Below, piece by piece: positions 1-27,922 of a stretch of DNA of 64,000 bases (positions are counted from its first letter, which is position 1; each line of letters starts with the position of its first letter). The notes under the pieces were generated by a model. It had not been told where the DNA came from and ran no database searches. It saw nothing but the letters and a program-made list of their open reading frames with translations. The position numbers and the translations under genes are program-made. The DNA is taken from positions 186,001 to 250,000 of IMG/VR virus record IMGVR_UViG_3300027736_001324; one strand, written 5' to 3'.

Positions 1-154
1 TAATAGGCCATTAATTAATCAGCTTCATATGGTAATTGAAACGTATCGTAATGAAGCCAGCAAAAAACTTGACGATGTTATGAAAAAACAAAACATTCAA
101 GGTCAAGTATCAATACAAAAAGAGGATCAAATTGGCAACAAAAATAGAACGTGA
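1..154 (+). CDS. 3' end of hypothetical protein (partial)
   Basis: Open frame from window edge to TGA at 152-154, overlapping the next gene. Confidence 0.5.
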   Translation, partial: NRPLINQLHMVIETYRNEASKKLDDVMKKQNIQGQVSIQKEDQIGNKNRT

Positions 155-737: not shown

Positions 738-766
738 TTGATTTACACAAAAGTCTATGTTATAAT
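738..766 (+). promoter_or_regulatory. sigma70-type early promoter
   Basis: TTGATT-17bp-TATAAT, with ATG 6 nt after the -10. Confidence 0.75.
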
Positions 767-772
767 ACATAG

Positions 773-6333: not shown

Positions 6334-7140
6334 ATGGACCATTACAATACTTTGGGTGTTAGTAAAAATGCAACCCCTGATGAAATAAAAAAATCATATC
6401 GCAAATTGGCTAGTCAGCATCATCCTGATAAAGGCGGCGACAAGGCTAAATTTCAAGATATACAAGCGGCTTACGATACATTAAGCAGCCCAGAAAAACG
6501 TCAACAATATGATAATCCCATGCCACAAGGATTTCACCATCAGGGTGGAATGCCTCAAGGATTTGAACACATATTTGGGCAGATGTTTGGTGGCGGTAAC
6601 CCGTTTGACCCGTTTAATCAACGTAGACAACAACCACAACAACAAGTATTCCGTACTACAATAAACATATCACTAGAACAAGCATTCAACGGCGGTGAAC
6701 AATTATTGAAATTACAAACACCTACTAATGTTCATGCGGTAACTATTCAAATACCCAAAGGGGTACAAAATGGTAATCAAATGAAAATCGATAACGTATT
6801 AGATGGTGCTAGTTTAGTAGTAGATTTTCGTATCGACCCGCATCTTAAATATGATAGACAAGGTAATGATTTAGTTTGTAACCATTCTATATCAGTATTA
6901 GATTTGATTATTGGAACTACTTTTGAATTCACGACCTTATCTGGAAAAACACTTGAGGTAACAGTAAAACCACGAACACAACCCTATATACAATTGAAAT
7001 TAACAGGACAAGGTATGCCCATCTACAACACTAGTGGATACGGTGACCAAATAATCTTGCTAAAACCGTTTATTCCTGATATCATTGATGAAGCGGTTAT
7101 CAATAGCATTTCTCAACAAAAACTAAAGGAGTCTAAATGA
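6334..7140 (+). CDS. dnaJ: DnaJ/CbpA-like co-chaperone (no zinc finger)
   Basis: J-domain with HPD (YRKLASQHHPDKGG), G/F region, C-terminal domain. Confidence 0.92.
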   Translation: MDHYNTLGVSKNATPDEIKKSYRKLASQHHPDKGGDKAKFQDIQAAYDTLSSPEKRQQYDNPMPQGFHHQGGMPQGFEHIFGQMFGGGNPFDPFNQRRQQPQQQVFRTTINISLEQAFNGGEQLLKLQTPTNVHAVTIQIPKGVQNGNQMKIDNVLDGASLVVDFRIDPHLKYDRQGNDLVCNHSISVLDLIIGTTFEFTTLSGKTLEVTVKPRTQPYIQLKLTGQGMPIYNTSGYGDQIILLKPFIPDIIDEAVINSISQQKLKESK

Positions 7141-9398
7141 CACATTCACCCGAAATCGAAAACATTATTGAACAATCAATTGAGTTTGCTAAAAGTCGTA
7201 AACACCAATATGTTACAGTAGAACATTTATTGCTAGCACTAATAAGCCACACTTCATTTAAAAAATGTATAGTAAGTTATGGTGCTGATGTAGAAACTAT
7301 GATCCTGGAAATTGGTTCATATTTGGATAGTCTACATGCTATCGTAAGCAAAGAAGATGAAGTAGTTCCACGCAAAACAAATAGTTTGGAACGTGTAATG
7401 AATCGTTCAGTAACACAAGTTTTGTTTACTGGTCGTAGACAAGTCACTACAGTTGATTTATATCTAAGTATCGCATCCGAAGGCAATAGTCATGCTCATT
7501 ATTTCTTATTGAAGTATGGAATTAGCAAAAATGAATTCGTAGCACATTGGCAGAAAAATTATAAACATAACGAAACTACTAATCTAACAGATGGTCAAGC
7601 TGACGAGATCCTTGAGGAATATACAATCAATCTAACTCAACTAGCAGCACAGGGCAAACTTGAACCATTGATCGGTCGCACAAAAGAACTTGATGATATC
7701 ATTAACGTACTTGCTAAACGTTTCAAGTCAAACGTATTGATGGTCGGTGATCCTGGCGTTGGTAAAACAGCAATTGCTGAAGGTCTAGCACAGATGATGA
7801 TTAACAAAGAAGTTCCAGAATTTTTGCAGGATCATCAACTATATAGTTTAGAAGTGGGTAGTTTGCTTGCTGGTAGTAAGTATCGCGGAGACTTTGAAGA
7901 AAAGGTCAAAGCAGTATTAGATGCACTGAACACAAAGAAAAAGACTATTCTTTTCATTGATGAAGCACACACTATGCAGGGTTCAGGTGGCTCAAACAAT
8001 GGGTCAGTTGACTTTGCTAATATGATTAAACCCGCAATCACTAAGGGCACTCTTAAAGTTATTGCTAGCACAACTTGGGAAGAATACTACGAAAGTTTTG
8101 AGAAGGATCGTGCATTGATGCGTAGGTTCTATCGTGTAACTGTTGACGAACCTAACCATGATACAACAATTCGTATTCTGAATGGGTTGAGTAGCCGACT
8201 GAATGATTTCCACAACGTTGAAATCACAGATGAAGCTATCAAAGCAGCAGTTGAAAGTGCTGACCGTTACATTCATGACCGAAAGAACCCGGACAAGAGT
8301 ATTGATTTGCTTGATGCCGCTTGTGCTAAACAACGTGTAGCAGAGAACAAGGGCGCAATGATTACTAAAGAACTTGTGTTTGACCAAGTTGAACGATTCA
8401 CTGGCGTACCTGCTGATAAGATGAAGGGTGATAACTTTGAATTGATTCATAAATTAGAATCAAACATTAAGGACAAACTATACGGACAAGATGAAACTGT
8501 ACAACAGGTACTTGAACGTGTTTATGTTTCATTTGCTGGTATCGGCAATGATAAGAAACCTACAGCAAGTTTCTTATTCTTAGGACCAACTGGTACTGGT
8601 AAGACTGAACTTGCTAAACTATTGAGTAAGAACTTAGATATGCCATTGCTTAAGTATGATATGAGTGAGTATGGAGAGAAGCATAGTGTTAGCAGTTTGA
8701 TTGGACCTCCTCCTGGATATGTTGGCTTTGGTGACAGTCAAGTGAGTGGTGGACGATTGATTAATGACTTGAGTAAGAACCCACATAGTATCATGTTATT
8801 TGATGAAGTTGAGAAAGCACATCCAGATATCTTTAATATCTTCTTACAGATGTTGGATGAAGGTCATATCACTGGATCTAATGGCAAGCAAGTTAACTGT
8901 AAGAACAGTATCATTATCATGACCAGTAACTTGGGTAGTAGTGATAGTGAACGCAACAACATTGGATTTGGTAATCAAGAGAAGACCGGTGAAGATGATA
9001 GAGCATTGAAAGAATTCTTTAAACCTGAGTTTAGAAATCGTGTTGACTTGATTTGCAAGTTTAACAAGTTAGATACCCTTGCTATTAAGAAGATTGTTAT
9101 CAAGTTTACCGATGACTTGAAAAAGAGTTTGGTTGATAAGCATGATATCACATTGAACTTGAGTGAGCCAGTAGTTGAGTATTTGGCAGAACAAGGTTAC
9201 GATAAGAAAATGGGCGCACGACCATTAGCACGTAAGATTGATGAATTGATTCGGGTGCCTCTAAGTAAAAAAGTATTGTTTGAACGCATTAAATCTGCTA
9301 CAATCAATGTTGTGATGACAGACGGTGCAATTGATTTTGCAGTAACACAAAAATTAACAGCGAAAGTAAATGAAAATGGGATTATTGAGGTCAGTTAA
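7137..9398 (+). CDS. clpA: ClpA-like AAA+ chaperone
   Basis: EHLLLAL N-domain, GDPGVGKT and GPTGTGKT Walker A, FIDEAH, DMSEY, GPPPGYVG, FDEVEKAH, MGARPL. Confidence 0.93.
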   Translation: MTHSPEIENIIEQSIEFAKSRKHQYVTVEHLLLALISHTSFKKCIVSYGADVETMILEIGSYLDSLHAIVSKEDEVVPRKTNSLERVMNRSVTQVLFTGRRQVTTVDLYLSIASEGNSHAHYFLLKYGISKNEFVAHWQKNYKHNETTNLTDGQADEILEEYTINLTQLAAQGKLEPLIGRTKELDDIINVLAKRFKSNVLMVGDPGVGKTAIAEGLAQMMINKEVPEFLQDHQLYSLEVGSLLAGSKYRGDFEEKVKAVLDALNTKKKTILFIDEAHTMQGSGGSNNGSVDFANMIKPAITKGTLKVIASTTWEEYYESFEKDRALMRRFYRVTVDEPNHDTTIRILNGLSSRLNDFHNVEITDEAIKAAVESADRYIHDRKNPDKSIDLLDAACAKQRVAENKGAMITKELVFDQVERFTGVPADKMKGDNFELIHKLESNIKDKLYGQDETVQQVLERVYVSFAGIGNDKKPTASFLFLGPTGTGKTELAKLLSKNLDMPLLKYDMSEYGEKHSVSSLIGPPPGYVGFGDSQVSGGRLINDLSKNPHSIMLFDEVEKAHPDIFNIFLQMLDEGHITGSNGKQVNCKNSIIIMTSNLGSSDSERNNIGFGNQEKTGEDDRALKEFFKPEFRNRVDLICKFNKLDTLAIKKIVIKFTDDLKKSLVDKHDITLNLSEPVVEYLAEQGYDKKMGARPLARKIDELIRVPLSKKVLFERIKSATINVVMTDGAIDFAVTQKLTAKVNENGIIEVS

Positions 9399-11116: not shown

Positions 11117-12459
11117 TGAGTACAATAGTAGTAATGCCCGGAGGCTTTCACCCGTTTCATGCAGGGCATGCCTCACTATATCAATCAGCATTGAAAACAT
11201 TTCCCGGTGCTGATGTATATGTGGCTGCTACTAACGATCAAAGTGAAAGACCTTTTCCTTTTGCTATTAAAGAAAAATTAGCTAAAGTAGCAGGTGTTGC
11301 TCCAGGACATTTTGTACAAGTTAAAAGTCCCTTTCAAGCAAAAGAAATAACACAAAATTATGATCCTGAAAATGATGTATTGATATTTGTTCGTAGTAAG
11401 AAAGATCGTAATGAACAACCAAAGCCCGGAGGCACAAAGAAAGATGGTAGTCCAAGTTACTTCCAACCCTGGACAGGAAAAAATCTACAACCATTCGGTA
11501 AACATGCTTATATAGATTATTTAGACACAGTTGAGTTTGGGCCTGGTATGAAACATGCTAGCCAAATACGTAATGCATGGCCTACCTTGAATGATAGGCG
11601 TAAGACAGCAATGGTTATGAGTTTATATCCTGCAACACAAAAGAACCCTAAGTTAGCAGCAAATGTTGTTAAGTTATTAGATGCTGGTATGGGAGTAGAA
11701 GAACAGACCTTAGATGAAAGTACAAGTAAAGATTCTACATTAAGAGCCGTTGTCAATGACATTAGTGAACCTATTGCTAGCGTATATAACAATATGCTAA
11801 TGCAAGCTGAGAAATATGTTGATAATAATGGTGCTTTAGATAAAGGATTCAGATTAATCGTAGCAGGGATCGGTGGTCGTTGGACACAGAACATGTACAT
11901 CAATAAACTTAAGAATGAATTATACGATTTGTGCAAGGTATATCCATCACAAACAAACGATTTGAAAGATTTCTTGTCTGGCAAAGAGAAGCATGGTGTG
12001 GTAGATATGCATAAATCATTTAGTATAATTGCTAAAGAATTACCAGTGATACTAGAAAGATTAGGTAGACATATTAATTCACCTGAATTGTCTAAAGCAG
12101 CAAAGCGCTGGGAACATAACAGAGAAGTGTATAAAGATTACGTAAGAGACAATTGGGACTCTGAAGAAATTGAAGTTACCCCTCCAGTAAAAAAACAAAA
12201 AAGCAATATTATTGGTCAACAGAATGCAGTAGTTGATAAGATTATTAATGATGTATTAGCTAAAATCAAACCTAGTGATGCAGGCAGTATCCGTAATACA
12301 TTAGCTAATGTTCCAATTAATAATAGATTAAATGCTTTACAAAAGATACTGTCTGATATGAACATGACAGTTAATGAGAAGATGAAGATGGGTGCTACGA
12401 TTGAGCCCATTGAAGAATCTAATATCTCCGAAAGCCTGGATTATTTAGAAGAAAAATAA
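11116..12459 (+). CDS. HxGH nucleotidyltransferase (cytidylyltransferase-like) fused to unknown modules
   Basis: PGGFHPFHAGH at N-terminus; C-terminal half unrecognised. Confidence 0.7.
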   Translation: MSTIVVMPGGFHPFHAGHASLYQSALKTFPGADVYVAATNDQSERPFPFAIKEKLAKVAGVAPGHFVQVKSPFQAKEITQNYDPENDVLIFVRSKKDRNEQPKPGGTKKDGSPSYFQPWTGKNLQPFGKHAYIDYLDTVEFGPGMKHASQIRNAWPTLNDRRKTAMVMSLYPATQKNPKLAANVVKLLDAGMGVEEQTLDESTSKDSTLRAVVNDISEPIASVYNNMLMQAEKYVDNNGALDKGFRLIVAGIGGRWTQNMYINKLKNELYDLCKVYPSQTNDLKDFLSGKEKHGVVDMHKSFSIIAKELPVILERLGRHINSPELSKAAKRWEHNREVYKDYVRDNWDSEEIEVTPPVKKQKSNIIGQQNAVVDKIINDVLAKIKPSDAGSIRNTLANVPINNRLNALQKILSDMNMTVNEKMKMGATIEPIEESNISESLDYLEEK

Positions 12460-12509
12460 TTCGTACCCCTCTTCCTGATGTAAATAATTATATCTTAATA
12501 GAGGACCTT

Positions 12510-13436
12510 ATGGCAACAAAGAAATCAAAAGCATCAGAAGAAAAAACAGTACCAGTAGAAATGGTACAAGAAATCGCTGAACAGGCGGCAGCAGAGCAAG
12601 CAGAAAAAGCAGCAGATGCTCCTGCTGAAGCACCCGCAGCAGGGCAAGTTCAAGTAAATGTAGACTTTCTACGTACAACCAAAGTGCATATCGCTATGCC
12701 CTGTTATGGTGGTATGTTGACTGAATCAACATTTATGAGTTTCATCAAGTGGGCTAACACAGCCCGTCAATTAAACATTGACTGGACATTAGAAACAATG
12801 GTCAATGAAAGTCTTATCAGTCGTGCCCGTAATACACTAACTGCTAAGTTCTTAGACATGCCAGACGCAACACATTTGTTCTTTGTTGACGCTGACATTG
12901 GTTGGGAGCCATGGCATTTACTAGTATTGTTAAATCGTGACGTAGATGTTATTGGTGGATTGTACCCAATGAAAACTATGCCAATCAAATGGGTAGTTAA
13001 TGGATTTGATGGTGCTGAAGAAGGACCAGACGGATTACAAGAAGTATCTAAAGCAGGTACTGGATTCTTGTTAATGAAGAAACATGTATTTGAGAAATTA
13101 AAAACTCATCCAGCAGTTAAGCAATACAAGAACGACATTGGATTAGATCCAAAGTTTGATCAACACTTGAAAACATATTTTGACACTGCGGTTCGTCAAA
13201 ATCGTTACTATAGTGAAGATTGGACATTCTGTGAAAACTGGCGTGACCTAGGTGGTCGTATCTGGATGGACAAACGTGTTCTATTGCGTCATAGTGGATC
13301 ATATGTTTTCTGTATGGAAAATCAAGAACACTTGATGAATACAGTTGGACCTATGTTCTTAGAACGTCAGCAAGGCATGGGATTAAAACTAGTTGACAAA
13401 GACGGCAACGAAGTTAAATCAGTCAAAGCAGCATAA
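12510..13436 (+). CDS. GT-A fold glycosyltransferase-like protein
   Basis: IAMPCYGG, ISRARN, LFFVDADI (DxD), GTGFLL, SEDWTFC. Confidence 0.72.
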   Translation: MATKKSKASEEKTVPVEMVQEIAEQAAAEQAEKAADAPAEAPAAGQVQVNVDFLRTTKVHIAMPCYGGMLTESTFMSFIKWANTARQLNIDWTLETMVNESLISRARNTLTAKFLDMPDATHLFFVDADIGWEPWHLLVLLNRDVDVIGGLYPMKTMPIKWVVNGFDGAEEGPDGLQEVSKAGTGFLLMKKHVFEKLKTHPAVKQYKNDIGLDPKFDQHLKTYFDTAVRQNRYYSEDWTFCENWRDLGGRIWMDKRVLLRHSGSYVFCMENQEHLMNTVGPMFLERQQGMGLKLVDKDGNEVKSVKAA

Positions 13437-13460
13437 GAAGGCCCCGAAAGGGGCTTTTCT
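13437..13460 (+). terminator. intrinsic terminator
   Basis: GCCCC-GAAA-GGGGC-TTTT, GNRA loop. Confidence 0.88.
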
Positions 13461-13481
13461 AATATATGACTAAATATAGAT

Positions 13482-13565
13482 ATGAGTTGGTTTAGACATA
13501 AGCCCCCAAAATATCCCCCTAAACCACAGAAGCCTGATCCCAAAAATGAACCTAAAAGAACTTAA
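13482..13565 (+). CDS. 27-aa Pro/Lys-rich micro-ORF
   Basis: MSWFRHKPPKYPPKPQKPDPKNEPKRT; ATG 5 nt after TAAATA; overlaps start of 13546 ORF. Confidence 0.45.
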   Translation: MSWFRHKPPKYPPKPQKPDPKNEPKRT

Positions 13566-16500
13566 TAGTTTTAAACTAAGTGACGCAGTTACATTCCACG
13601 ACAAACTTAACCCTAAGTTATGGAATAGCACTAAGTTGCGCCCAGATGTTAGAGAACGGCTATTAATAATAGCACAAGACTTTTTACAAGAATTAGGGGT
13701 AAACGATTTAGATGTTAAAGATATAACAATATCTGGCAGTAACGCAGCGTTTAGTTACACTAAGCATAGTGATTTGGATTTACATATATTAGTAGACATG
13801 GGTAACTTACCTGTAGATGAAGTATATAGAGAATTATTTACAGCAAAGAAAACAATATATAATGACACACATGACATAAGAATTCATACTATTCCAGTAG
13901 AATTATATGTACAGGATAGTAGACAACCTGTAGTAAGTTTAGGTGAATATAGTGTAATGAACGACCAGTGGATAAGAATACCCACTAAGCGTAGAAGTGA
14001 TTTTGACCAAACCGCCACCAAAAGCAAATATGAAAAGTTATTAAGTTTAATAGAGATCGCCCTCAAGTCAAAGAAGTATAGCAAAGTAAAACATATAATA
14101 GACACAATCAAAAGATATAGACAAGCAGGTTTAGATAAAGGTGGTGAGTTTGGTCCTGAGAATTTAGCATATAAGATGTTGCGTAGTCAGGGATATATTA
14201 CGAAGTTATATGATTTAAGAGACAAGTTACATAGTGAGAAGTTATCGTTTGAGACTATGTATCAGAATATAGATGAGAATGAAGAAACAAATCATTGGTA
14301 CGATGCTGGCGTGAAGGATGCTACTCGTGGTGCTAGACCTAATCCACGCACATATTTGCCAACACTTAAAGACAAGCAAGCAAAGCATCCAGAAGAAGTA
14401 TATTTTTATATGAATGGGTATAAAAGTGTTAAGCAAGGTGTGGCGGAAGGCTCCGAGAACAATAACCCAATAGCAAATAAAATATTCTTTGCTCGTAGTA
14501 ATAAAACACCCAAAGGATGGAGTTATGACCATGTGGGGTTTATAACTCAAGATGGAAAACAAATTCAAATGAGTGGGCATAAAGGCAATGATGTATATGT
14601 CACTAACGATGTGACTGATGATCCGGAGTTTCCCAAACAAAATATCAAAATTGTATCATTATCAAAACCAGTATCGGTTCCTACAACTAACTCAGTAGAA
14701 GCAGAAAATTGCGGAACATTTGTGGCAAATGTATTACGAGCCAATGGTATAAAAGATTTTGATACACAAAAACTATATAGTGTGTTCAAAAAGCCTCAAG
14801 AGCAAGGTGTGGCGGAAGATAAAGAAAATAACAATTCAAGATTAGATGAAATTTTATATAAGTTATGTAATATTGTTAAAAAAGAAATAAAAGAAAAGAC
14901 AGGGGAACACGCTGTTGCTGCTTGTATTATTGATCCTGATAACAGAATAGTAGCAAAAACAAGTAAAGACAAACACAGTAGATGGATTCATGCTGAACAC
15001 AATGCCATTGATACATATGAAAAAAAGTATGGTGAAGTACCAGAAGGCAGTATTATAGTAACTACATTAAGCCCCTGCAATGAATATGATGATAGAACCT
15101 CCGATGAAAGATTTGGTGAAAGTTGTACAGATTACATAAACAGCAAAGGCATTAAAAAAGTCTATTGTGGATATATGGATCCTACACAAGATAATTATAA
15201 CAGAGAATTTAATGTCATAGAAACTAGTGACACCGACCTTCGTAGGCAATGTAAACAGTTTGCTGATACTTTTTTGAAGAAAAATATAGATGAAGCGTTT
15301 GATACTCCACTTCCAATAACATGGGAGAAAGGTATGCATGGTGATATTGATGCACTTGCTAAATTACCCGATGGATCAAATTTAAGCATTATGTTTAATA
15401 AACAAGATAATATTAAACCTGATGACAAGACATGGATGGTTGAATTTTATAGAAACAACAGTCAAGAAGTAACAGGTGAGGGTGACGCACAAAAAGTATT
15501 TTCTACTGTGCTAGTTGCTATTCAACAATTCATTAAAAAATACAAACCACTAAAAATCTATTTCTCAGCAAGCAAAGAGATGGATCCGACTATAAATTAC
15601 GGCCCAGATGATGTTGTGCCTAATCCTGAAAGCCGTGCTAAGTTATATGATAGAATGGTACTGCGTTATGCTAAATCTTGGGGATATAAGTTTTTCCGTG
15701 CTGATAACGGTTCTTCTGTTATATATCAATTGTCAAGAATACCAAAACAAACGGCTGTGGGTGAAGATTACACCATGCAATTTGCTGCTGAAAAAACTCC
15801 ACCAGTAAGTCCCTATGCCGGCGTTAAAGATAATCAATATCGTGGTGGAATAAGTGAAGCCTCTGGTAAAAAAATCAGTTTCAAAGTACAAAAAGGCAAT
15901 GGAAAATTCTCTACCACTTTAACTGTTAACAATACACCAGCTGGAATATATCAATATGACAGTAACACTGGGCGTAGCATTGCTGAAGTTTATCCAGAAT
16001 TCAAAGGAAAAGGACTAGGTAAATTATTAGTTTTACATGCTATCTACACCGCAGCAAAATTAGGATTAGATTTCCAAGAAGATGAATCAAGAACCAGTGC
16101 TTATGATAATGTGTTAGATAGTTTAAGCAGCAACGGTTATATTGTAGATGATGATGGATATTGGTATGTTACAGGTGACGGGGAGCAATATCTAAAACAA
16201 GCATTGAACGAAGCAAGTGGGTATATCCCAAGCGAAAAAACTCCTGCAATAAATCCATACGGCGGTCTTAAAGATAACCAATTTCGTGGTGGGATAAGTG
16301 AAGCAGTTTCTCCTAAATATGTAACTAGAGTTGATATGACACCCATTAAAGATTTTGAATCTGGTATGAAAACATATTATGGAACAGATGATTGGCATGA
16401 AAGCGGGTTAGAAAAGAAAGATAACTTCACACAAGAAATGAAGGGTTTATATGCAGGTGAACCACATCGTACAGCATTATATGCTAGTGGCAATGCAAGT

Positions 16501-17001
16501 AAAACTAGATTCTTAGAATTGAATGATCCTAAAACAGGTCAACCTGTCGTATATTTTGATAAGAAAGATATCCCTAGAATTCGCAACACAAAGACATATG
16601 TTAGTGTGTTTGATGCTAGTAGATTTAAAAAGTTACCAACAGGGGAATACTTTAGTGAGAACCCTGGTAAACCATTGAAACAAGAAGAAATAACCGATCC
16701 TTTCAAGTATATGACGAACAATGGTTGGGTAGTAAGAGTAACTGATGATATTCAAAAAGAATTCAAAAAGGCACAACAACTACATAAAGCAGGCAAGATA
16801 GACCATTATGGTGGTGAAAACTTGACGGAAGCAAGTGGGTATATCCCAAGCGAAAAACAAAAGAATGATCCTAGATATAGCACCGCACTAACAATAGATG
16901 TACACCCAGATTCTATAAAAAAGAACGCAAAAGCCTTCTATTGGAACACCAGTAGAGCAGGAATCCCCCCAACTGCTAAAGCAAACGGCAAAATCTATTA
17001 A
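13546..17001 (+). CDS. multi-module polyprotein: Pol-beta nucleotidyltransferase, permuted NlpC/P60-like, Zn deaminase, GNAT and unknown modules
   Basis: GSNA..DLDLH..VELYVQD; DHVGF..NCGTFV; HAE..PC..C; VYPEFKGKGLG; modules joined at xxE and QGVAE repeats. Confidence 0.8.
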   Translation: MNLKELNSFKLSDAVTFHDKLNPKLWNSTKLRPDVRERLLIIAQDFLQELGVNDLDVKDITISGSNAAFSYTKHSDLDLHILVDMGNLPVDEVYRELFTAKKTIYNDTHDIRIHTIPVELYVQDSRQPVVSLGEYSVMNDQWIRIPTKRRSDFDQTATKSKYEKLLSLIEIALKSKKYSKVKHIIDTIKRYRQAGLDKGGEFGPENLAYKMLRSQGYITKLYDLRDKLHSEKLSFETMYQNIDENEETNHWYDAGVKDATRGARPNPRTYLPTLKDKQAKHPEEVYFYMNGYKSVKQGVAEGSENNNPIANKIFFARSNKTPKGWSYDHVGFITQDGKQIQMSGHKGNDVYVTNDVTDDPEFPKQNIKIVSLSKPVSVPTTNSVEAENCGTFVANVLRANGIKDFDTQKLYSVFKKPQEQGVAEDKENNNSRLDEILYKLCNIVKKEIKEKTGEHAVAACIIDPDNRIVAKTSKDKHSRWIHAEHNAIDTYEKKYGEVPEGSIIVTTLSPCNEYDDRTSDERFGESCTDYINSKGIKKVYCGYMDPTQDNYNREFNVIETSDTDLRRQCKQFADTFLKKNIDEAFDTPLPITWEKGMHGDIDALAKLPDGSNLSIMFNKQDNIKPDDKTWMVEFYRNNSQEVTGEGDAQKVFSTVLVAIQQFIKKYKPLKIYFSASKEMDPTINYGPDDVVPNPESRAKLYDRMVLRYAKSWGYKFFRADNGSSVIYQLSRIPKQTAVGEDYTMQFAAEKTPPVSPYAGVKDNQYRGGISEASGKKISFKVQKGNGKFSTTLTVNNTPAGIYQYDSNTGRSIAEVYPEFKGKGLGKLLVLHAIYTAAKLGLDFQEDESRTSAYDNVLDSLSSNGYIVDDDGYWYVTGDGEQYLKQALNEASGYIPSEKTPAINPYGGLKDNQFRGGISEAVSPKYVTRVDMTPIKDFESGMKTYYGTDDWHESGLEKKDNFTQEMKGLYAGEPHRTALYASGNASKTRFLELNDPKTGQPVVYFDKKDIPRIRNTKTYVSVFDASRFKKLPTGEYFSENPGKPLKQEEITDPFKYMTNNGWVVRVTDDIQKEFKKAQQLHKAGKIDHYGGENLTEASGYIPSEKQKNDPRYSTALTIDVHPDSIKKNAKAFYWNTSRAGIPPTAKANGKIY
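14434..14451 (+). repeat. QGVAEG junction repeat copy 1
   Basis: CAAGGTGTGGCGGAAGGC. Confidence 0.95.
14803..14820 (+). repeat. QGVAE junction repeat copy 2
   Basis: CAAGGTGTGGCGGAAGAT. Confidence 0.95.
15790..16304 (+). repeat. 71-bp imperfect direct repeat flanking GNAT module
   Basis: 15790-15860 vs 16234-16304 (EKTPxxxPYxGxKDNQxRGGISEA). Confidence 0.9.
16210..16857 (+). repeat. 30-bp perfect direct repeat
   Basis: GAAGCAAGTGGGTATATCCCAAGCGAAAAA (EASGYIPSEK) at 16210-16239 and 16828-16857. Confidence 0.95.
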
Positions 17002-17022
17002 GTTTCCATATTGTGGTATTTT

Positions 17023-17030
17023 GATAAATA
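17023..17030 (+). promoter_or_regulatory. T4-like late promoter
   Basis: GATAAATACTCTAT identical to 10108-10121. Confidence 0.65.
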
Positions 17031-17053
17031 CTCTATAACTTTGGGAAACCGTC

Positions 17054-18616
17054 ATGAGATTTAAGCAAATAGTAGAAAATTCAACAACAGCAGGATCAGT
17101 CGCAACCGTAGCACAGCCTATGATGACTCAAACCCGTGAAAGTGTAGATGTCAAGGGACTAAAGCCCGTAAAACAATTAATGAAGGGCACTAAAAAGAAA
17201 GGTCCCTACGCTAATAGTATTGTTGAAGGAAAAGTTAAAGAACTTATCAGCGATTTAAAAAACTTAACTTCTTATGATTTTGAAAAGAAACACAAACAAT
17301 CTAAGGCTGACGTTAGAGCCGACATGAAGAAAGTCACCGAAGATGATCTTTCAGAACAAGACTTAATCGTTATCCCAGGACAAGGTAGACTAAGAGGTAC
17401 TGGATTTACAAAGCATGACCCTGATCGTGCTGAACATGAAGGTCAAACACTAAAGAATAGTTTACACACTATCATTCGTTTAGCAACTCATTTAGACAAA
17501 GAATTAACAGTAAGAGATAACTTCCCAGAATGGGTGTCAGAGAAAGTCGGTTCAATCAAGGGTGACATGCTTTCTGTAATGAACTATATAATCAGCAGCC
17601 AAGAAATGCGACATGATCCAGATACTATAAATGAACTCAGTTCTGCTCTGTTACAAACAGCCGCACAAGCTGCTACAGACAAACGTAATCAAGCAATGGA
17701 TCCCGAGTTACATAATGCATTAGGTGGCGGCTATATGAATCCATTAGCAAAACATTATGATAATGTATCACAAAAAATGGACAATAGGGCAGCACAAGTA
17801 AAAAGAAAAGAAACGATACAAAATATCGCTTCTAAAATCGCTTCTCCGGCGGTGATGCGTAAGATGGGTATGAATGAAGGCTCACAACGAGTTGATTCAA
17901 TTGTTACTGACGCATTACGAGTAATGAAGGGTCCAGAAGTAAGTGATGCTGTACTAGCATTAAAGAGAGTATTAGGCGACAGAGCATATAATGAGCGCCG
18001 CGGCTTTTATAGTTTCTATGTTGATCAAATACATGATATGTACGGTCAGCAAGGCGTGGCGGAAGGCGAGTTAGAAGAAGATTTAAGCCGTAGAGGATTT
18101 TTAAGAGGCTTGGGCGCGGCAACGTTAGGTGCTACAGCATTAGGTGCTGCAAGTAAAGCACAGGCAAGTCAAGATTTAGGAAACGGATTTGTTTTAACCA
18201 CTGTTGACGTTTTTGGTGGAAAATTTAAAGCAGTATTAGATACACAATCTGATATACATTATTTGCCAAATCGTCACGAAGGCGGTGGCGCTATTGTTAG
18301 AAGCATGGCTCCTTTTATTATGATAAAGAACGGTCAGACAAACACTGCTATGAATGTTGGGCCAGCTGTTCAGGCTGCATTAAAGAAAGCTGGACTATTG
18401 AAAGGTGTAGAAGAAGGTGTTAAAGAAGGCAAAATTGACTTTGCTAAGAAATTACAAAAGAATGTAGATAATCATAACAAAGCTGTAGTACAAACTAAAA
18501 AAGCTGTAGGTAGCAGAATTTCTGACATTGGCGCCGGCGGCAAAGAATACAATGTAAAGACTGATGCTGCATGGGATGCTGCTAAGAAAAAAGTTAGTGA
18601 AGGTTTAAGGAAATAA
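17054..18616 (+). CDS. multi-module putative internal head protein with internal Tat-signal module
   Basis: MRFKQIVE start, xxE-delimited modules, QGVAEG then SRRGFLRGLGAA...AQA. Confidence 0.7.
   Translation: MRFKQIVENSTTAGSVATVAQPMMTQTRESVDVKGLKPVKQLMKGTKKKGPYANSIVEGKVKELISDLKNLTSYDFEKKHKQSKADVRADMKKVTEDDLSEQDLIVIPGQGRLRGTGFTKHDPDRAEHEGQTLKNSLHTIIRLATHLDKELTVRDNFPEWVSEKVGSIKGDMLSVMNYIISSQEMRHDPDTINELSSALLQTAAQAATDKRNQAMDPELHNALGGGYMNPLAKHYDNVSQKMDNRAAQVKRKETIQNIASKIASPAVMRKMGMNEGSQRVDSIVTDALRVMKGPEVSDAVLALKRVLGDRAYNERRGFYSFYVDQIHDMYGQQGVAEGELEEDLSRRGFLRGLGAATLGATALGAASKAQASQDLGNGFVLTTVDVFGGKFKAVLDTQSDIHYLPNRHEGGGAIVRSMAPFIMIKNGQTNTAMNVGPAVQAALKKAGLLKGVEEGVKEGKIDFAKKLQKNVDNHNKAVVQTKKAVGSRISDIGAGGKEYNVKTDAAWDAAKKKVSEGLRK
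18050..18067 (+). repeat. QGVAEG junction repeat copy 3
   Basis: CAAGGCGTGGCGGAAGGC. Confidence 0.95.
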
Positions 18617-18617
18617 T

Positions 18618-21293
18618 ATGAAAACAAATGAATTTTTAACAGAATTATCTAACGACAAGTTAGGAAAGTACAAAACCGCTGCAGGAAAAGATGCTACTGC
18701 TGCTGATAAAGCTGGTAATTTTAAGCGCGGCAATAAGCGTATGAGTGGCATTACCAATGCAACTAAAAAAGAATTTGCAAATGATGCTAAAAAGGTATCA
18801 GAAAGTAAGCAATTTGTTTTAAATGAATCTTTATTAATGGAAGATCCCATTTATCGTCAATTTAAAAGTGTAAGTAAGTATATTGCTGAACGTAGACTTA
18901 GCAAACAAGAAATCTATCAAATATTTGCTGATGCTGAAACCGGCATGACAAGTAAAGATACTGGTGCTAATCGTACAATGCTTGGCCGTGGTAAAGATGT
19001 AACAGGTAAAGCAGTTACCAGTGTTAAAGATGCTGTATCAGGTGTTTTAAACTCTATACAATCTTCTGCTCCAGTAGCAGCCGTTGATGTTGCATATGAT
19101 CAAGCTACAGCTGCCTTAGGAAAATTAACCGGCGGAGATAAAAGCAAGATAATGAAATCTATCATTGGATATCGTAATCTTGCTAAACAATATCCTAAAA
19201 CAGCAGGATTTGCTAAAGCAGCATTGGTTGCTGCTGTAGGACTTGCTACCGGTGGAGCAGGACTACCTGCTATTGCAGGTTTAACTTATGCACTTGATTC
19301 TGCAATTAGAGGCGATAAGTTATCAAGTGTAATTGGTAAGGGTGCCGGCGCTGCTGCGTTAGCATACGGTGGACAAGCTGCGGCACAATATGCTCAAGGT
19401 GGCGCTGATATTCCAGGAGCAAATCCACATCAACTTGATCCGTCACAAATGCAACAAGGCCCAGGTGGTGGAGGAGGTGGCGGTGCAGGTGGTGCTGATA
19501 TTCCTGGAGCAAATCCACATCAATTAGATCCATCACAAATGCAATCAGGATCCGGTGGTGCTGATATTCCTGGAGCGAACCCGCATCAATTAGATCCGTC
19601 ACAAATGCAACAAGCAGCAGGCGGTTATAAGGAAGTAATAAAGACAGTAGCAAAAGGAGATACATTAAGTAATATTGCTCAACAATACGAAACTAGTGTT
19701 GAAGCATTAATGAGAGCAAATCCTCAAATAACAAATCCCGATGCTTTAGCAATAGGAACTAAACTTAATATACCTCCAGTAAATGCTGATACTTATCTGC
19801 AAGGTGTAGGTACTGCTGCTGATACTGCTGCCAAAACTGCGTCTGGCGCATATGATAGTGTACCGGCTGCATTAGGTAAACAAGCAGCAGCCAATCGTGC
19901 CGGTGTTACTGAAAGTATTTGGAAAAATCATTCTCCTAAACTAGATAAAAACATTATAGAATCTATTAATTTTAAAAAGTTATCAGCATATGATTTAATA
20001 GACAAGAAAACTACTGCGTTCAACTGGGCATTAAATGAAAGTATTGGTAATAAAAATAGAAATATAAATTTAACTACAGTAGGGGTATATACTATATTTG
20101 AAAATGTTGACCGTTACCGTCTTGCTGTAATGGAAGTAGCAGGAGTTCCGGGCAGCACTCGTCCAGAGCAGTATCGTCCAGATGAGCCGGAAGGTAAAGG
20201 TAAGGAAAGCAAACCAGGTTTAATTGGTAGAGGACTTAATTGGTTAGACAAAACTGCCGGCAAAGTAGGCGGCGCATTAAGTAATTTTGGACATCAGTTC
20301 ACTACAAACGTTACAAAAGAAAAACTAAAAATGAATTGGACTCAAAAAGGTGAGCCAAGTGATTCAGATGAAGTAGCGGCTTTTATGAAAAGTCAAGGTG
20401 TACCAGAAGATGTAATTTCAACAGTATACACAAAGATGGGTCTACCTTTTACTATGACTCCCGCTGCAGCCGCAACTGCCCCGGCGGCAAACACAGGATC
20501 AACAAGTGCTAATACTAGTGGTGCTGGTGCAGGCGCATTTAGTTCAATGGCAAATCAATTACCTAAATCAACTAATACATCATCTACTGGCGGCACAACT
20601 ACAAATACATCAACTGGATTAACACATACAAGCAAAGCAGTTGCACCAACATCAGGTGGTGCAGGTGGGACAAGTAGTGTAGGCGGTATGTCACAACCAT
20701 CACAGCCTAATAGTCCTAGTCAACAACAAGCAGTGGCTCGCACAGTAAGACAACAGATTGATGACATTATGCATACCATAATGACTCAACATAATGACGA
20801 CCAACCATCATTAGTAAAATATTTGCGCCAACGTCTTGATAGTAGTTTTCCCGGTGATGCTACAAACGCAGCAGCACCAAAAAGAGCAGCACCTAAAAAA
20901 GCAGCACCTAAAAAAGCAGCGCCCAAAACAGCAGCACCTAAAGGCAAAAAACCTGACAACACAGTAGCGATGCCAAAACGTGAAAAATTCCGTATAGGCA
21001 AAGACGAAATCAAACCCGATAATCCCATGTATGATAAAATTAAGGCCGCTAGCGGGACAAATGAATCATTAGGATTAAACTATCCAGAAACATATGAACA
21101 AACTAATGATAAATTTAAAAGCAAAGGTCAACGTAGAGTTGCTGCACTAACCAATGAAGAAGAAAAACAACGTTTAGATCCTAAATGCTGGACTGGTTAT
21201 AAAAAGCAAGGCACTAAGATGAAGGGTGGTACTAGAGTTAATAACTGTGTCCCAATAAAAGAATCAGCAATATTACAAGGCTTAAGAGGATAA
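18618..21293 (+). CDS. multi-module putative virion/ejection protein with LysM domain
   Basis: MKTNEFLTE start, Gly/Ala hydrophobic segment, LysM (VAKGDTLSNIAQQY...NPQITNPDALAIGTKLNIP), AAPKK repeats, KCWTGY..NCVP module. Confidence 0.72.
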   Translation: MKTNEFLTELSNDKLGKYKTAAGKDATAADKAGNFKRGNKRMSGITNATKKEFANDAKKVSESKQFVLNESLLMEDPIYRQFKSVSKYIAERRLSKQEIYQIFADAETGMTSKDTGANRTMLGRGKDVTGKAVTSVKDAVSGVLNSIQSSAPVAAVDVAYDQATAALGKLTGGDKSKIMKSIIGYRNLAKQYPKTAGFAKAALVAAVGLATGGAGLPAIAGLTYALDSAIRGDKLSSVIGKGAGAAALAYGGQAAAQYAQGGADIPGANPHQLDPSQMQQGPGGGGGGGAGGADIPGANPHQLDPSQMQSGSGGADIPGANPHQLDPSQMQQAAGGYKEVIKTVAKGDTLSNIAQQYETSVEALMRANPQITNPDALAIGTKLNIPPVNADTYLQGVGTAADTAAKTASGAYDSVPAALGKQAAANRAGVTESIWKNHSPKLDKNIIESINFKKLSAYDLIDKKTTAFNWALNESIGNKNRNINLTTVGVYTIFENVDRYRLAVMEVAGVPGSTRPEQYRPDEPEGKGKESKPGLIGRGLNWLDKTAGKVGGALSNFGHQFTTNVTKEKLKMNWTQKGEPSDSDEVAAFMKSQGVPEDVISTVYTKMGLPFTMTPAAAATAPAANTGSTSANTSGAGAGAFSSMANQLPKSTNTSSTGGTTTNTSTGLTHTSKAVAPTSGGAGGTSSVGGMSQPSQPNSPSQQQAVARTVRQQIDDIMHTIMTQHNDDQPSLVKYLRQRLDSSFPGDATNAAAPKRAAPKKAAPKKAAPKTAAPKGKKPDNTVAMPKREKFRIGKDEIKPDNPMYDKIKAASGTNESLGLNYPETYEQTNDKFKSKGQRRVAALTNEEEKQRLDPKCWTGYKKQGTKMKGGTRVNNCVPIKESAILQGLRG
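19398..19613 (+). repeat. three coding repeats GGADIPGANPHQLDPSQMQ
   Basis: Copies start at 19398, 19488, 19554. Confidence 0.9.
20871..20945 (+). repeat. five 15-bp AAPK(K/R/T/G) tandem repeats
   Basis: GCAGCACC(T/A)AAAAAA-type units. Confidence 0.9.
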
Positions 21294-21295
21294 TT

Positions 21296-21736
21296 ATGTT
21301 AACAGAAGATTTAAAAGTGTTATTGGCAAGTGTTAACTCATTATCCATCAAAGCACAAAACTTTCATTGGAATGTAGAGGGAGATAACTTCCCTCAATAT
21401 CACGAATTCTTTGGCAACTTCTATGAAGAAATATACAGTTCAGTAGATAAAATTGCTGAATACATTCGTACATTAGACAGTTATAGTCCTGGCAGCTTAA
21501 CACGCTATGCTGAATTAACTATCATTCAAGATCAACTTAAGATTCCACGTGCTGAATTAATGTTTGCTGAATTGTATGAAGATAATGCTAGAATGATTGA
21601 TTTGCTTAATCATTGCTTTGCTTCTGCTACACAAGAAAATAAACAAGGTATCGCTAACTTTATTGCTGAAAGGTTAGATGCTCACGAAAAACATCAATGG
21701 ATGGTTCGTAGTGTTCTAAAGAAAGCCCGTGCATAA
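21296..21736 (+). CDS. dps: Dps/ferritin-like protein
   Basis: HWNVEG..F...H..F...Y, DKIAEYIR, HEKHQWM. Confidence 0.9.
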   Translation: MLTEDLKVLLASVNSLSIKAQNFHWNVEGDNFPQYHEFFGNFYEEIYSSVDKIAEYIRTLDSYSPGSLTRYAELTIIQDQLKIPRAELMFAELYEDNARMIDLLNHCFASATQENKQGIANFIAERLDAHEKHQWMVRSVLKKARA

Positions 21737-22290
21737 TGAGAGCAAGAGAGTTTTTATCTGAGTCCTATCGCTCGGGTATAAATGAAGAACTCAGGGTCGA
21801 TGTGCCTAACGAAGAATGGTTACAAGACGCAATTGACTATGCTAAAAGTAAAAGTCCCGATCGCAATGGTCTACCTTACATGGGAAAGACCACTGCTACA
21901 GTTAGGAACGTTGTGGTTCCGGTCAGCATATTAAGACGGATACCAGGCATGCGTCAAGAGCAATCAAAGGTAAGACACCACGATCTTGCTGCTATTAGAA
22001 AAATTATGCACACTACAGGTAAACTGCCATTACACGGACATACTGGACAAGAATATAAACCTTTTATTAATGTAGCATATGATGGTAGTGCTTGGGTCAA
22101 TGAAGGTAATCATAGGATCATGGCTGCGGCCGAACTTGGTTGGGAGTCATTGCCAGTGGAAATTTCATACTTTGACGGCGGTGAAAGAATCAAGTCAGGT
22201 CCAATGTATCCGGGTAAGATTGGGCTTGCAGAAGCAATGGATCAAGGAACTAGATGGACCGGTGATGAACCATATAGACAAACGGATTAA
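21736..22290 (+). CDS. ParB/Srx-like domain protein with capsid-targeting-like N-terminus
   Basis: EGNHRIMAAAELGWESLPV; starts MRAREFLSE. Confidence 0.7.
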   Translation: MRAREFLSESYRSGINEELRVDVPNEEWLQDAIDYAKSKSPDRNGLPYMGKTTATVRNVVVPVSILRRIPGMRQEQSKVRHHDLAAIRKIMHTTGKLPLHGHTGQEYKPFINVAYDGSAWVNEGNHRIMAAAELGWESLPVEISYFDGGERIKSGPMYPGKIGLAEAMDQGTRWTGDEPYRQTD

Positions 22291-25220: not shown

Positions 25221-27922
25221 GTTACGTGGATGCGGTTCATTCTAGGGATGACGATAGAATTTTTGTAGTTGAACGAGACCAGAACGGAAAGCGTCAATAC
25301 AAAGAATATCCCACAAACTATGTACTCTACTATCCCGATCATAAGGGAAAGTATCGCAGTATATACGGTGACCCTGTAAATCGTTTCAGTACACGCAAAC
25401 GACAAGAGTTTGAAAAAGAACGCAGAATTCATTCAGGTAAGAAATTATTTGAAAGCGATGTGCCAGTAGTGTTTCGCTGCCTTAGTGAAAACTATCTTAA
25501 GGCAGACGTTCCTAAACTACATACATGCTTCTTTGACATTGAGGTAGACTTTGATCCTGAGAAGGGTTTCAGTCCTACAACTGATCCATTCAATCCAGTT
25601 ACTGCTATCTCATTGTATTTAGATTGGCAAGATACATTGGTTACATTGGTCATTGCTCCCAAGCATATGTCACCAGAGACAGCACAGGAAATATGTAATG
25701 AGTTTAATAATTGTATGCTTTTCACTAATGAAAAGGATATGTTTGATGTTTTCTTTCAACTCATTGAAGATGCTGATGTAATGACTGGCTGGAATTCTGA
25801 AGGATACGACATACCTTACATGGTTAATCGTGTCACAAGAGTAATGAGTAAGGATGACACACGCAAGTTTTGCTTGATGGGTCAACTTCCTAAGCCAAGA
25901 GAGTACGAAAGATTTGGCAAAAGTGAAACTACATACGACTTAGTAGGTCGTATTCACATGGACTATTTGCAACTCTACAAGAAATACAACTATGAATCAC
26001 GACATTCATATAAGTTAGATGCTATTGGTGAGATGGAAGTAGGTGAGAACAAAACTCAATATGAAGGTACACTTGATCAGTTGTATAACAAAGACTTTAA
26101 AAAGTTTATTGAATACAATAGACAAGATACCGTGCTGTTAGTGAAGATCCACAACAAACTCAAATTCTTAGAACTTGCTAATCAATTGGCGCATGAGAAC
26201 ACAGTACTGCTTCCAACAGTAATGGGTTCTGTAGCAATGATTGAAATGGCAATTTTTAATGAAGCCCACGAACGTGGATTAGTAGTGCCAGACAAAAAAA
26301 GAAGGAATGAAAATGCAGAAGAAACAACGCCAGCAGCAGGTGCCTTCGTTGCTACGCCGAAAAGAGGTATGCACGAATACGTCGGAGCAGTTGACATTAA
26401 CTCGCTCTATCCCTCGGTTATTCGTAGCCTCAACATGGCAGGAGAAACCATTATTGGTCAAGTCCGTCAGACATTAACTGACAAATATATGCTTGACAAA
26501 GGCAAGCAACTTGCTAGCCTTAAGAAGCGTTTCAAAGAAGGCGACGATGACGTTACTGGTGCTATTCTATGGGAAAACTTGTTTGGTGTATTAGAATACA
26601 CATCAATTATGAATCAAGAACGTGGCACAATTCTTACTATAGATTACGAAGATGGTCGTAGTGAGGAATATAGTGCCGCTGAAATATGGAAGATGATCTT
26701 TGATAGCAATCGCCCATGGATGCTCTCTGCTAATGGTACTATCTTTACTTACGAAAAAGAGGGCGTAGTTCCAGGACTATTGTCTCGCTGGTACTCAGAT
26801 CGTAAAGTAATGCAGAAGAAACTTAAAGAATCTACTACTGATGAAGATAGAGACTACTGGGATAAGCGTCAACTTGTTCGTAAGATTTTGTTGAACTCGG
26901 CGTATGGCGCACTATTGAACGAACATTGTAGATTCTATGACAAACGTATCGGTCAAAGTGTTACACTAAGTGGTCGTCAGATTGTTAAACATATGATGAG
27001 TACCATCAATGAAACAGTTACTGGTGATTATAACCATGAAGGCCCTGCAATTGTGTATGGTGATACTGACTCCTGTTACTTTACCGCGTATCCCATTCTC
27101 AATTCGCAAATAGCAAACGGTGATATTAAATGGGATAAAGAAAACTGTATCACATTGTATGATGGTATTGCTGACCAAGCAAACGAATCATTCCCTGCAT
27201 TCATGGAAAAAGCATTTCATGCTCCAAGAAAGAATGGCGCAATCATTAAAGCTGGTCGTGAATTGATCGGTGATCGTGCTATCTTTATCACAAAGAAACG
27301 CTATGCTATCAATATCTTTGATAAAGAGGGTAAGCGTAAAGATACAAACGGTAAAAACGGTGATATCAAAGCAATGGGTCTTGACTTGAAACGTGCTGAT
27401 ACTCCTAAATACATTCAAGAATTCTTAATGGATGTACTTACTAAGGTCCTCGCTGGTGAGCAACGTGATAAAGTTATTGAAATGGTTAAAGAATTCAAAA
27501 CTAAACTATCTGAACAAGATAGTTGGACAAAGGGTAGCCCAAAGAGTGTTAATAACTTAACTAAGCACACTATTGAATTTGAAAAGACTGGTAAGTGTGG
27601 TGTGGGTCATGCAAGAGCAGCAATTAACTGGAACTATCTACGCAGAGTATACGGTGACAACTATAGCCAAAAGATTATAGATGGCATGAAGATTGTGGTG
27701 TGTAAACTCAAAGATAACGCATTGGGTTTCACTAGTATTGCATATCCAGTAGATGAATTGAGATTGCCAACATGGTTCAAAGAATTACCATTTGATGATT
27801 TACTAATGGAATCAACATTGGTGGATGAAAAGATTGACAACTTACTTGGTGTATTAGATTGGGATATCAGAAGCAATACAGATGTTAACTCAATGTTTGA
27901 TGAACTATTCACATTCGGTTAA
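25217..27922 (+). CDS. family B DNA polymerase (gp43-like)
   Basis: Exo FFDIEVD, GWNSEGYD, YNRQD; pol DINSLYPS, KILLNSAYG, YGDTDS, KKRY. Confidence 0.97.
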   Translation: MSYVDAVHSRDDDRIFVVERDQNGKRQYKEYPTNYVLYYPDHKGKYRSIYGDPVNRFSTRKRQEFEKERRIHSGKKLFESDVPVVFRCLSENYLKADVPKLHTCFFDIEVDFDPEKGFSPTTDPFNPVTAISLYLDWQDTLVTLVIAPKHMSPETAQEICNEFNNCMLFTNEKDMFDVFFQLIEDADVMTGWNSEGYDIPYMVNRVTRVMSKDDTRKFCLMGQLPKPREYERFGKSETTYDLVGRIHMDYLQLYKKYNYESRHSYKLDAIGEMEVGENKTQYEGTLDQLYNKDFKKFIEYNRQDTVLLVKIHNKLKFLELANQLAHENTVLLPTVMGSVAMIEMAIFNEAHERGLVVPDKKRRNENAEETTPAAGAFVATPKRGMHEYVGAVDINSLYPSVIRSLNMAGETIIGQVRQTLTDKYMLDKGKQLASLKKRFKEGDDDVTGAILWENLFGVLEYTSIMNQERGTILTIDYEDGRSEEYSAAEIWKMIFDSNRPWMLSANGTIFTYEKEGVVPGLLSRWYSDRKVMQKKLKESTTDEDRDYWDKRQLVRKILLNSAYGALLNEHCRFYDKRIGQSVTLSGRQIVKHMMSTINETVTGDYNHEGPAIVYGDTDSCYFTAYPILNSQIANGDIKWDKENCITLYDGIADQANESFPAFMEKAFHAPRKNGAIIKAGRELIGDRAIFITKKRYAINIFDKEGKRKDTNGKNGDIKAMGLDLKRADTPKYIQEFLMDVLTKVLAGEQRDKVIEMVKEFKTKLSEQDSWTKGSPKSVNNLTKHTIEFEKTGKCGVGHARAAINWNYLRRVYGDNYSQKIIDGMKIVVCKLKDNALGFTSIAYPVDELRLPTWFKELPFDDLLMESTLVDEKIDNLLGVLDWDIRSNTDVNSMFDELFTFG

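Follow-up and report, generated by a model that had tools for sequence, protein, structure and literature searches.

How does a phage use a single gene that strings together up to seven folded modules, several of them enzyme-like? The question is raised by an open reading frame (ORF) of 1151 codons in a 64,000-nucleotide stretch of DNA (the window), bases 186001–250000 of the 263,709-bp virus record IMGVR_UViG_3300027736_001324. A first description made from the letters and their translations (the sequence-only reading) had parsed this frame as a string of effector modules. Our answer, to which we give a probability of roughly 0.7, is that the product is a head-packaged polyprotein that is cut in trans by the prohead protease of the phage into injected effectors. 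The frame is intact under table 11 and does not require an alternative genetic code. It is real, because its length is far beyond chance at 36% GC and because it has more than 560 database relatives.

The evidence that carries this answer lies in the borders between the modules. All nine of them fall directly after a [LIV]-x-E tripeptide (Table 1; the arrow marks the predicted cut), and the whole protein holds 21 such tripeptides. The borders drawn in the sequence-only reading thus proved exact. The organising principle, a cassette array whose borders are probable prohead-protease sites, was missed there, and two 30-aa spacers (residues 741–771 and 890–919) were absent from its list of modules. 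Three linker strings each occur twice within the polyprotein: QGVAE[GD]xENNN, NQ[YF]RGGISEA and EASGYIPSEK. In T4, the prohead protease gp21 cuts after the Glu of L/I-x-E; the internal proteins IPI–III carry a 10-residue N-terminal capsid-targeting sequence (CTS) that is subsequently cleaved off, and Alt is processed at both ends (PMC9026906).

The same rule holds across the family. A word-index search gave 564 relatives of 634–1573 aa among 8000 candidates scored, and the modules were mapped in the best 120 relatives plus the query, 121 proteins in all. A [LIVM]-x-E lies within 4 residues of 473 of the 523 junction instances (90%) and of 152 of the 179 junction types, compared with 15% of random positions. 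This test is not fully independent at the borders of the sequence-only reading, where the initial modules were cut, while about 90 further modules were set by homology gaps. The family junction logo has Q at P5, G or N at P4, V, I or L at P3, E at P1 and A, D, G or S at P1'. The identity between relatives ends exactly after the border Glu; module B, for example, ends in KQGVAE and is then followed by at least eight unrelated sequences.

By its sequence, the virus is a T4-superfamily jumbo phage of fresh water. The record has a CheckV completeness of 69%, is about 97% coding and has a GC content of 36–38%. The nearest phages in a tblastn search with the major capsid protein, at 62–66% identity, are Vibrio phage 2.275.O, Sinorhizobium phage Phosso, Pseudomonas phage PA5oct and the 350-kb phages of E. 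coli, and DNA of the polyprotein gene is present in many freshwater and lake metagenomes. The genome encodes a prohead protease of the gp21 type (Peptidase_S77, PF03420, record positions 25576–26211 on the minus strand, 99 bits, above the Pfam cut-off), whose gene adjoins those of a Gp23-type capsid protein (PF07068, E 3e-99), a scaffold and a T4-type portal (PF07230, E 3e-104). About 25 residues ahead of its conserved core, the capsid protein carries KKQLLAE↓SSAG, presumably the place of gp23 maturation.

The genome also has the targeting half of the T4 system. In T4 itself (NC_000866), ipII and ipIII begin with MKTYQEFIAE↓A and ipI with MKTFKEF. Six other ORFs of the present genome open with a T4-like leader of the form M[RK]xxE[FI][ILF]xE (MRAKEFITE↓, MRANEFIVE↓, MKTNEFLTE↓, MRAREFLSE↓, MRAREFIAE↓ and MRFSEIISE↓), and are likely to encode head-packaged cargo. 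One of them, a 128-aa ART-PolyVal ADP-ribosyltransferase (ART), would be by analogy a minimal counterpart of T4 Alt. Five large proteins of the genome share the string [QK]GVAE↓[GDE], with 12 copies between them. The 826-aa protein has five of these copies, and it and its 502-aa neighbour look like further polyproteins. The 520-aa product of the gene directly downstream of the polyprotein gene has no Pfam or PHROG match and is probably another processed head protein; the length of the downstream gene product differs widely among relatives (428, 520 and 1921 aa). Since T4-like leaders and recurrent [QK]GVAE↓ strings occur together, targeting and cleavage in this phage very probably follow the T4 system, and the 1151-aa polyprotein is very probably one of several multiply cut substrates. 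Outside the window, a 1021-aa protein with QGVAE↓ sites is encoded at positions 120931–123996 of the genome record, and a single ORF of 6597 aa occupies positions 53007–72800 (+).

Table 1. Coordinates of the polyprotein gene, its modules and linker repeats, and the other features described. Positions are those of the window unless marked as record positions.
Feature	Positions	Strand	Residues	Site	Remarks
268-aa ORF, then 753-aa ClpB-like double-AAA+ protein	6334–9398	+			upstream of the locus
Terminator-like GC-rich hairpin and T-run	13439–13459	+			3' of the upstream gene; found by reading the sequence
Polyprotein gene	13546–17001	+	1–1151		ATG to stop; from ORF list and translation
Module A, Pol-beta-type nucleotidyltransferase-like	13546–14277	+	1–244	NIDE↓N	
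Module B, small module	14278–14448	+	245–301	QGVAE↓G	
Module C, permuted papain/NlpC-P60-like	14449–14817	+	302–424	QGVAE↓D	
Module D, zinc deaminase, dCMP/RibD type	14818–15294	+	425–583	NIDE↓A	
Module E, predicted GNAT-fold domain	15295–15765	+	584–740	VGE↓D	weak DUF6934 match
Spacer l1	15766–15858	+	741–771	GGISE↓A	conserved after module E; contains repeat D1
Module F, minimal GNAT-like	15859–16212	+	772–889	LNE↓A	motif KGKGLGK
Spacer l2	16213–16302	+	890–919	GGISE↓A	repeats D1 and D3
Module G, DUF6886-related	16303–16830	+	920–1095	NLTE↓A	
Tail Z, C-terminal peptide	16831–16998	+	1096–1151		basic (pI 9.8)
Repeat D2	14432–14449 and 14801–14818	+		QGVAE	18 identical nt; flanks module C
Repeat D3	16204–16239 and 16822–16857	+		E↓ASGYIPSEK	94% identical; flanks l2 and G
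520-aa protein	17054–18616	+		QGVAE↓G (site 337), KGVEE↓G (site 454)	directly downstream of polyprotein gene
891-aa protein with CTS-like leader	18618–21293	+		MKTNEFLTE↓L	LysM domain
146-aa ferritin/Dps-like protein	21296–21736	+			Pfam Ferritin E 4e-22; between two CTS-bearing genes; position conserved in relatives
ORF with CTS-like leader	21736–22290	+			
128-aa protein with CTS-like leader	42075–42461	-		MRAREFIAE↓S	ART-PolyVal, PF18760, E 4.7e-14
502-aa protein	42463–43971	-		two GVAE↓G	GP88 domain; adjoins 826-aa protein
826-aa protein with CTS-like leader	43968–46448	-		MRFSEIISE↓N; five internal [QK]GVAE↓G	C-terminal DUF6321
ORF with CTS-like leader	record 117507–117881				
ORF with CTS-like leader	record 117878–118264				

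The linkers could instead be flexible spacers and recombination hot-spots in a polyvalent protein that is trimmed at its ends or not cleaved at all, so that a 130-kDa chain is packaged and injected whole. Polyvalent proteins that combine nucleotidyltransferase (NTase), GNAT, ART and peptidase domains form a recognised class (PMC5512222), the DNA repeats in the linkers could by themselves account for cassette exchange, and cleavage is inferred here, not observed. Yet the linker variants (QGVAE, NIDE, GGISE, SLNE, NVNE and NLTE) retain exactly the requirements of a gp21-type protease, a hydrophobic P3 and Glu at P1, while the other residues vary. This motif also stands at the end of the CTS-like leaders and in the N-terminal region of the capsid protein. 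A folded multidomain protein of 130 kDa would also be hard to thread through the tail channel, whereas units of 13–28 kDa resemble the T4 internal proteins. We regard an uncleaved chain as unlikely.

The notion of independent modules also held at the level of folds. Modules C and E, each modelled alone, fold confidently, and the linkers are disordered; neither a single interdependent fold nor a failure of conservation at the catalytic residues was found. The Pol-beta NTase claimed for the N-terminus (module A) stands as a motif-level assignment. G64-S65, D76-x-D78 and E119 are invariant in the homologue alignment, the module matches phrog_36119 (E 5e-43), and standalone homologues, some annotated as nucleotidyltransferase, occur in cyanophages, Maribacter phages and Lak phages. 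On the other hand, it has no Pfam match, and its profile aligns the motif with the DrrA AMPylase domain in the PDB weakly (E 0.15). The zinc deaminase (module D) is secure: Pfam dCMP_cyt_deam_1 (PF00383) matches residues 435–542 at E 9e-12 (45.2 bits, cut-off 25), and 19 homologues all keep the HAE and PCx15C motifs. Among solved structures, RibD (2hxv, E 4.8e-6) is nearest, and NCBIfam gives weak matches to its models for RibD and for the anti-phage dCTP deaminase; by these matches, it is a nucleotide-type rather than a tRNA-type deaminase.

Module C had been called a permuted NlpC/P60-like domain, and the AF2 model, with a core pLDDT of 80–94 and both flanking linkers below 50, supports the permuted papain-like/NlpC-P60 clan. 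The six best matches in the VIA structure comparison all belong to it: YiiX (Z 6.7), a C92 peptidase (6.6), the PPPDE deSUMOylase (5.2), the type VI secretion effector TseH (5.2), PLAAT4 (4.6) and Aichivirus 2A (4.5); the next match falls to 2.9. The module-wise Foldseek search that had been proposed returned nothing from the PDB at E ≤ 0.001 for this model, so the fold is assigned from the VIA ranking together with the conserved residues. These are an invariant D-H, a second His 16 residues on and an N-C at a helix start (H40, H56 and C100 in alignment A1; the Cys begins helix 100–110), a pattern that we take to be the H-box/NC arrangement of the LRAT/PLAAT-type permuted NlpC/P60 enzymes. By this model, module C may have amidase, acyltransferase or peptidase activity.

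With its papain-like fold and its conserved His, His and Cys, module C might itself cut the linkers, in the manner of RNA-virus polyproteins or of the polyvalent proteins that bear a metallopeptidase (MPTase), for which embedded peptidases are the proposed release mechanism (PMC5512222). We reject self-processing as very improbable because the papain-like module is rare in the family: it is present in about 4 of the 121 members, and the linker motif is universal. Moreover, the nearest folds (YiiX, PLAAT, PPPDE and TseH) are amidases and acyltransferases, not Glu-specific endopeptidases, and the motif fits the specificity of the protease encoded in the genome.

For the following domain (module E), listed as unknown in the sequence-only reading, the border held and a GNAT fold can now be assigned by structure. 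The AF2 model has a pLDDT of 82.5, and the top 50 matches in Foldseek and VIA are almost all GNAT acyltransferases (1vhs at Z 8.5; Foldseek E 4e-4). TGxGD is invariant at the beta4-alpha3 position, as is LY in the following helix. A BamA-like PDB match (9hjm, E 0.0035) was judged spurious, and profile searches of PDB sequences were uninformative for modules E and G. A BFVD search with the model of module E gave 52 phage proteins at E ≤ 1e-3; many are multidomain proteins with Zeta toxin, ParB, deaminase or RadC-JAB domains. Several of the matches are, at the level of fold, to a part of Alt-like RNA polymerase ADP-ribosylases of T4-like phages (E ~1e-4, TM 0.5–0.56). A sequence link between module E and T4 Alt was sought by profile search of the T4 genome, hhalign, BLASTP, a reverse search in the present genome and PHROGs, all negative. 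Visual comparison shows a likeness between the N-terminus of T4 Alt, MELITE↓LFDEDTTLPIT, and the start of module E, E↓AFDTPLPIT. The module shares its PHROGs with EST35_0349 of PA5oct, a 141-aa protein annotated as structural on the basis of ESI-MS/MS. This homologue is a standalone protein that starts MHLFE↓LFDQ. In ORF276 of the KVP40-like Vibrio phage ValKK3, a two-module protein, NLTE↓AFDRP precedes the DUF6934-like half.

The GNAT that the sequence-only reading did name (module F) fared less well on its own sequence, where Pfam GNAT is matched at E ~0.1 and the profile matches the GNAT 1yvk at E 0.008, but its close relatives carry PF13508, PF14542 and PF00583, and a mini-GNAT is weakly supported. 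Modules E and F are not recent duplicates of each other, since hhalign gives a probability of 1%. The weak ART-like character suggested for module G found no support: no Pfam ART matches it, and hhalign against the genome's own ART-PolyVal protein gives a probability of 0.1%. It appears to be related to DUF6886 (PF21820, E 5e-5, below the cut-off; relatives carry PF21820). R9, S34, Y60 and E115 are conserved. An exhaustive search of representatives found 169 relatives of module G, many of them in other polyproteins and many standalone, about 180 aa long, with MKxFxEFxxE leaders; standalone relatives of module C also bear CTS-like leaders. A language-model neighbour of module G at 0.87 is a lead only, and language-model atlas searches returned unnamed viral clusters only. 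Spacer l2 is a chimera in which repeated k-mers join the start of the tail (ASGYIPSEK) to the end of l1. The basic tail Z is a candidate removable targeting peptide. A second conserved C-terminal tail, GVAE↓NFADG[KR], follows modules of the C and G types in five metagenome proteins of other phages, and there may be several alternative removable tails.

The 121 proteins fall into 76 architectures, which draw on about 50 module clusters. Module A (120/121), module E (112/121), a 30-aa spacer (107/121) and a 55-aa tail (120/121) that is always preceded by E↓ASGYIP make up a fixed frame. The cargo between them varies: the deaminase occurs in 30 of the proteins, the mini-GNAT in 28, module B in 20 and module G in 7, and relatives carry DUF5661, an NT5C-type nucleotidase, an M48 peptidase, ART-PolyVal, ParB_N or GIY-YIG. 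By sequence, then, the gene is a hypervariable cassette array on a fixed frame. A megablast search of the gene against 50,697 phage records gave no match, and in tblastn against phage records the matches were confined to the N-terminal 240 aa, module E and part of module G. The phage's own genome holds no paralogues of the polyprotein modules.

The variation can be seen in lake populations, and it follows the linkers. These are also DNA repeats, one of 71 nt (83% identity), one of 36 nt (94%) and one of 18 nt (identical). When contigs from four lake metagenomes were aligned to window positions 12400–17900, they contained joints of 14276 to 15770, 14445 to 15292, 14448 to 14800, 14453 to 15287 and 15855/15860 to 16828, with ends within about 20 nt of module borders. 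The joint 14448 to 14800 was found in two lake metagenomes and 15855/15860 to 16828 in three runs. There are lake variants without C, without C and D, without B to E, or without F, l2 and G, and their arrangements match those in the protein family. Other joints, with short sides of about 20 nt reaching into the next gene, were taken as cross-matches between linker repeats. The Logan lake contigs over the same positions are 200–700 nt long, with many variants and many loose ends at the linkers, which fits high micro-diversity breaking assemblies at cassette borders.

These observations suggest the following course of events. The precursor would be incorporated into the prohead, where the gp21-type Peptidase_S77 protease would cleave it after the Glu of the [L/I/V]-x-E linkers. 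Some seven folded products would result: a 28-kDa NTase, the 6.6-kDa module B, a 13.6-kDa permuted papain-like protein, an 18-kDa zinc deaminase, an 18-kDa GNAT-fold protein, a 13-kDa mini-GNAT and a 20-kDa DUF6886-related protein. Also freed would be the two spacer peptides, 3 kDa each, and the 6-kDa basic tail. The folded products would stay in the capsid, enter the host with the DNA and act as early host-modifying or counter-defence enzymes, on the precedent of T4 Alt and IPI. Cassettes between the frame elements would be exchanged by recombination at the repeated linkers. The sequence-only reading had proposed injected effectors in general terms, and this part of it has gained strong indirect support from the S77 protease, the CTS-like leaders elsewhere in the genome, the border motifs and the PA5oct virion homologue. 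The targets it suggested, namely tRNA, nucleotides and immune signalling molecules, are guesses.

Several points weigh against this course of events. The motif is short, and 12 of the 21 [LIV]-x-E sites lie inside modules. A few family junctions are without it, although most of these are artefacts of the crude segmentation. The polyprotein starts MNLKELNSF, without the T4-type N-terminal CTS carried by the six other genes. The T4 late-promoter motif TATAAATA showed no enrichment, and a CTAAATA survey gave no established late-promoter signal. The gene sits among replication and chaperone genes, distant from the head module, as the T4 ip and alt genes likewise do. The link to PA5oct is distant homology of one module. 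For the phage and its close relatives alike, cleavage and packaging are inferred, and the same applies to injection, the targeting signal and every enzymatic target.

Some of these points would be expected of a multi-enzyme protein that is never part of the virion and remodels nucleotide pools or host proteins in the cytoplasm, either unprocessed or cut by machinery such as that associated with ClpB and DnaJ. The gene belongs to a conserved block with genes for DnaJ, a ClpB-like AAA+ protein, DNA polymerase and ligase, not with head genes, it lacks the CTS, and the late-promoter surveys yielded no established signal. The order of DnaJ, ClpB-like AAA+ protein, polyprotein and further large variable proteins, with other genes intervening, is kept in three other contigs; a related 356-kb contig retains the order DnaJ then ClpB. 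To our knowledge, phage-encoded chaperones are unusual. With a terminator-like hairpin behind the upstream gene, transcription may begin anew at the polyprotein gene. However, CTS-like leaders and GVAE sites are present in neighbours within this block, T4 places its ip and alt genes outside the head cluster as well (NC_000866), module E has a homologue in the PA5oct virion, and the standalone relatives of modules C and G bear CTS-like leaders. Nor, as far as we know, are ClpB and DnaJ site-specific endoproteases. A purely cytoplasmic role is in our view quite unlikely, and we retain the head-packaged polyprotein.

We can go one step further, more tentatively and with a little less than even confidence, and view the system as plug-and-play capsid cargo of T4-superfamily jumbo phages in lakes. 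Any small enzyme flanked by [LIV]-x-E linkers could then be inserted into the constant carrier, each linker would serve as both a protease site and a recombination repeat, and the population's arsenal of injected counter-defence enzymes would be continuously reshuffled; module E or the tail would provide a CTS-independent packaging signal. We found no paper on this family, or on DUF6934 or DUF6886 in an injected-cargo role. If the head-packaged polyprotein is correct, the T4 principle of capsid targeting and gp21 cleavage extends from single small proteins to multi-enzyme polyproteins, and polyvalent proteins gain a concrete release mechanism without an embedded peptidase. Modules flanked by [LIV]-x-E in a genome with an S77 protease would be a simple rule for mining injected phage effectors in metagenomes; most of the roughly 50 module types of the family are likely counter-defence candidates. 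The linker-plus-frame design would also lend itself naturally to the packaging of foreign proteins in phage heads.

The closest known system is that of T4 IPI, IPII, IPIII and Alt. It shares with this phage the T4-type head genes, the S77 protease, the L/I-x-E↓ motif and the scattering of cargo genes. The T4 proteins are small enzymes or inhibitors that are carried in the head and injected, while injection here is a proposal. T4 encodes its cargo proteins one per gene, each with an N-terminal CTS. In the present phage, up to seven modules share one frame with internal sites, and the polyprotein has no N-terminal CTS but a conserved frame of NTase, DUF6934 module and tail; its cleavage is predicted.

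The polyvalent proteins of Iyer, Burroughs, Anand, de Souza and Aravind (2017) combine 2–15 disparate effector domains per polypeptide in phages and conjugative elements (PMC5512222). The likeness extends to the domain repertoire (NTase and GNAT here; ART-PolyVal, ParB_N, M48 and GIY-YIG in relatives), the seven folded modules, the mosaicism, the predicted delivery with the DNA and the analogy to viral polyproteins. Their release was proposed to occur through embedded peptidases, mostly a zincin-like MPTase and rarely a C-terminal assemblin-like domain, and T4-like phages are mentioned only for solo Alt-type ARTs (PMC5512222). The polyprotein described here differs in having no Pfam match to an MPTase or assemblin-like domain and in carrying, at its junctions, the site of a separately encoded prohead protease.

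The inner-body and ejection proteins of phiKZ, 201phi2-1 and SPN3US are similar in that jumbo phages eject head-internal proteins into the host. There, a gp21 homologue (gp175/gp245) cuts after the Glu of S/A-x-E at multiple sites per substrate (PMC9026906; cf. PMC5694885 and PMC10052503). These phages are of another lineage, the nucleus-forming chimalliviruses, the P3 preference is different, and most of the substrates are propeptide-bearing paralogues with structural or inner-body roles; they do not form strings of recognisable enzymes with cassette exchange. In the Dar system of phage P1, anti-defence proteins are likewise packaged in the head, some are processed (DdrB), and they are injected with the DNA, but they are encoded by separate genes and incorporated in an ordered hierarchy, with no T4-type protease motif and no modular string. 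Finally, polymorphic toxins share the constant trafficking frame, the exchangeable enzymatic modules and the high diversity in populations. They are bacterial and secreted, with one C-terminal toxin domain and immunity genes, whereas the polyprotein belongs to a phage, carries several modules and has no immunity partner that we could see.

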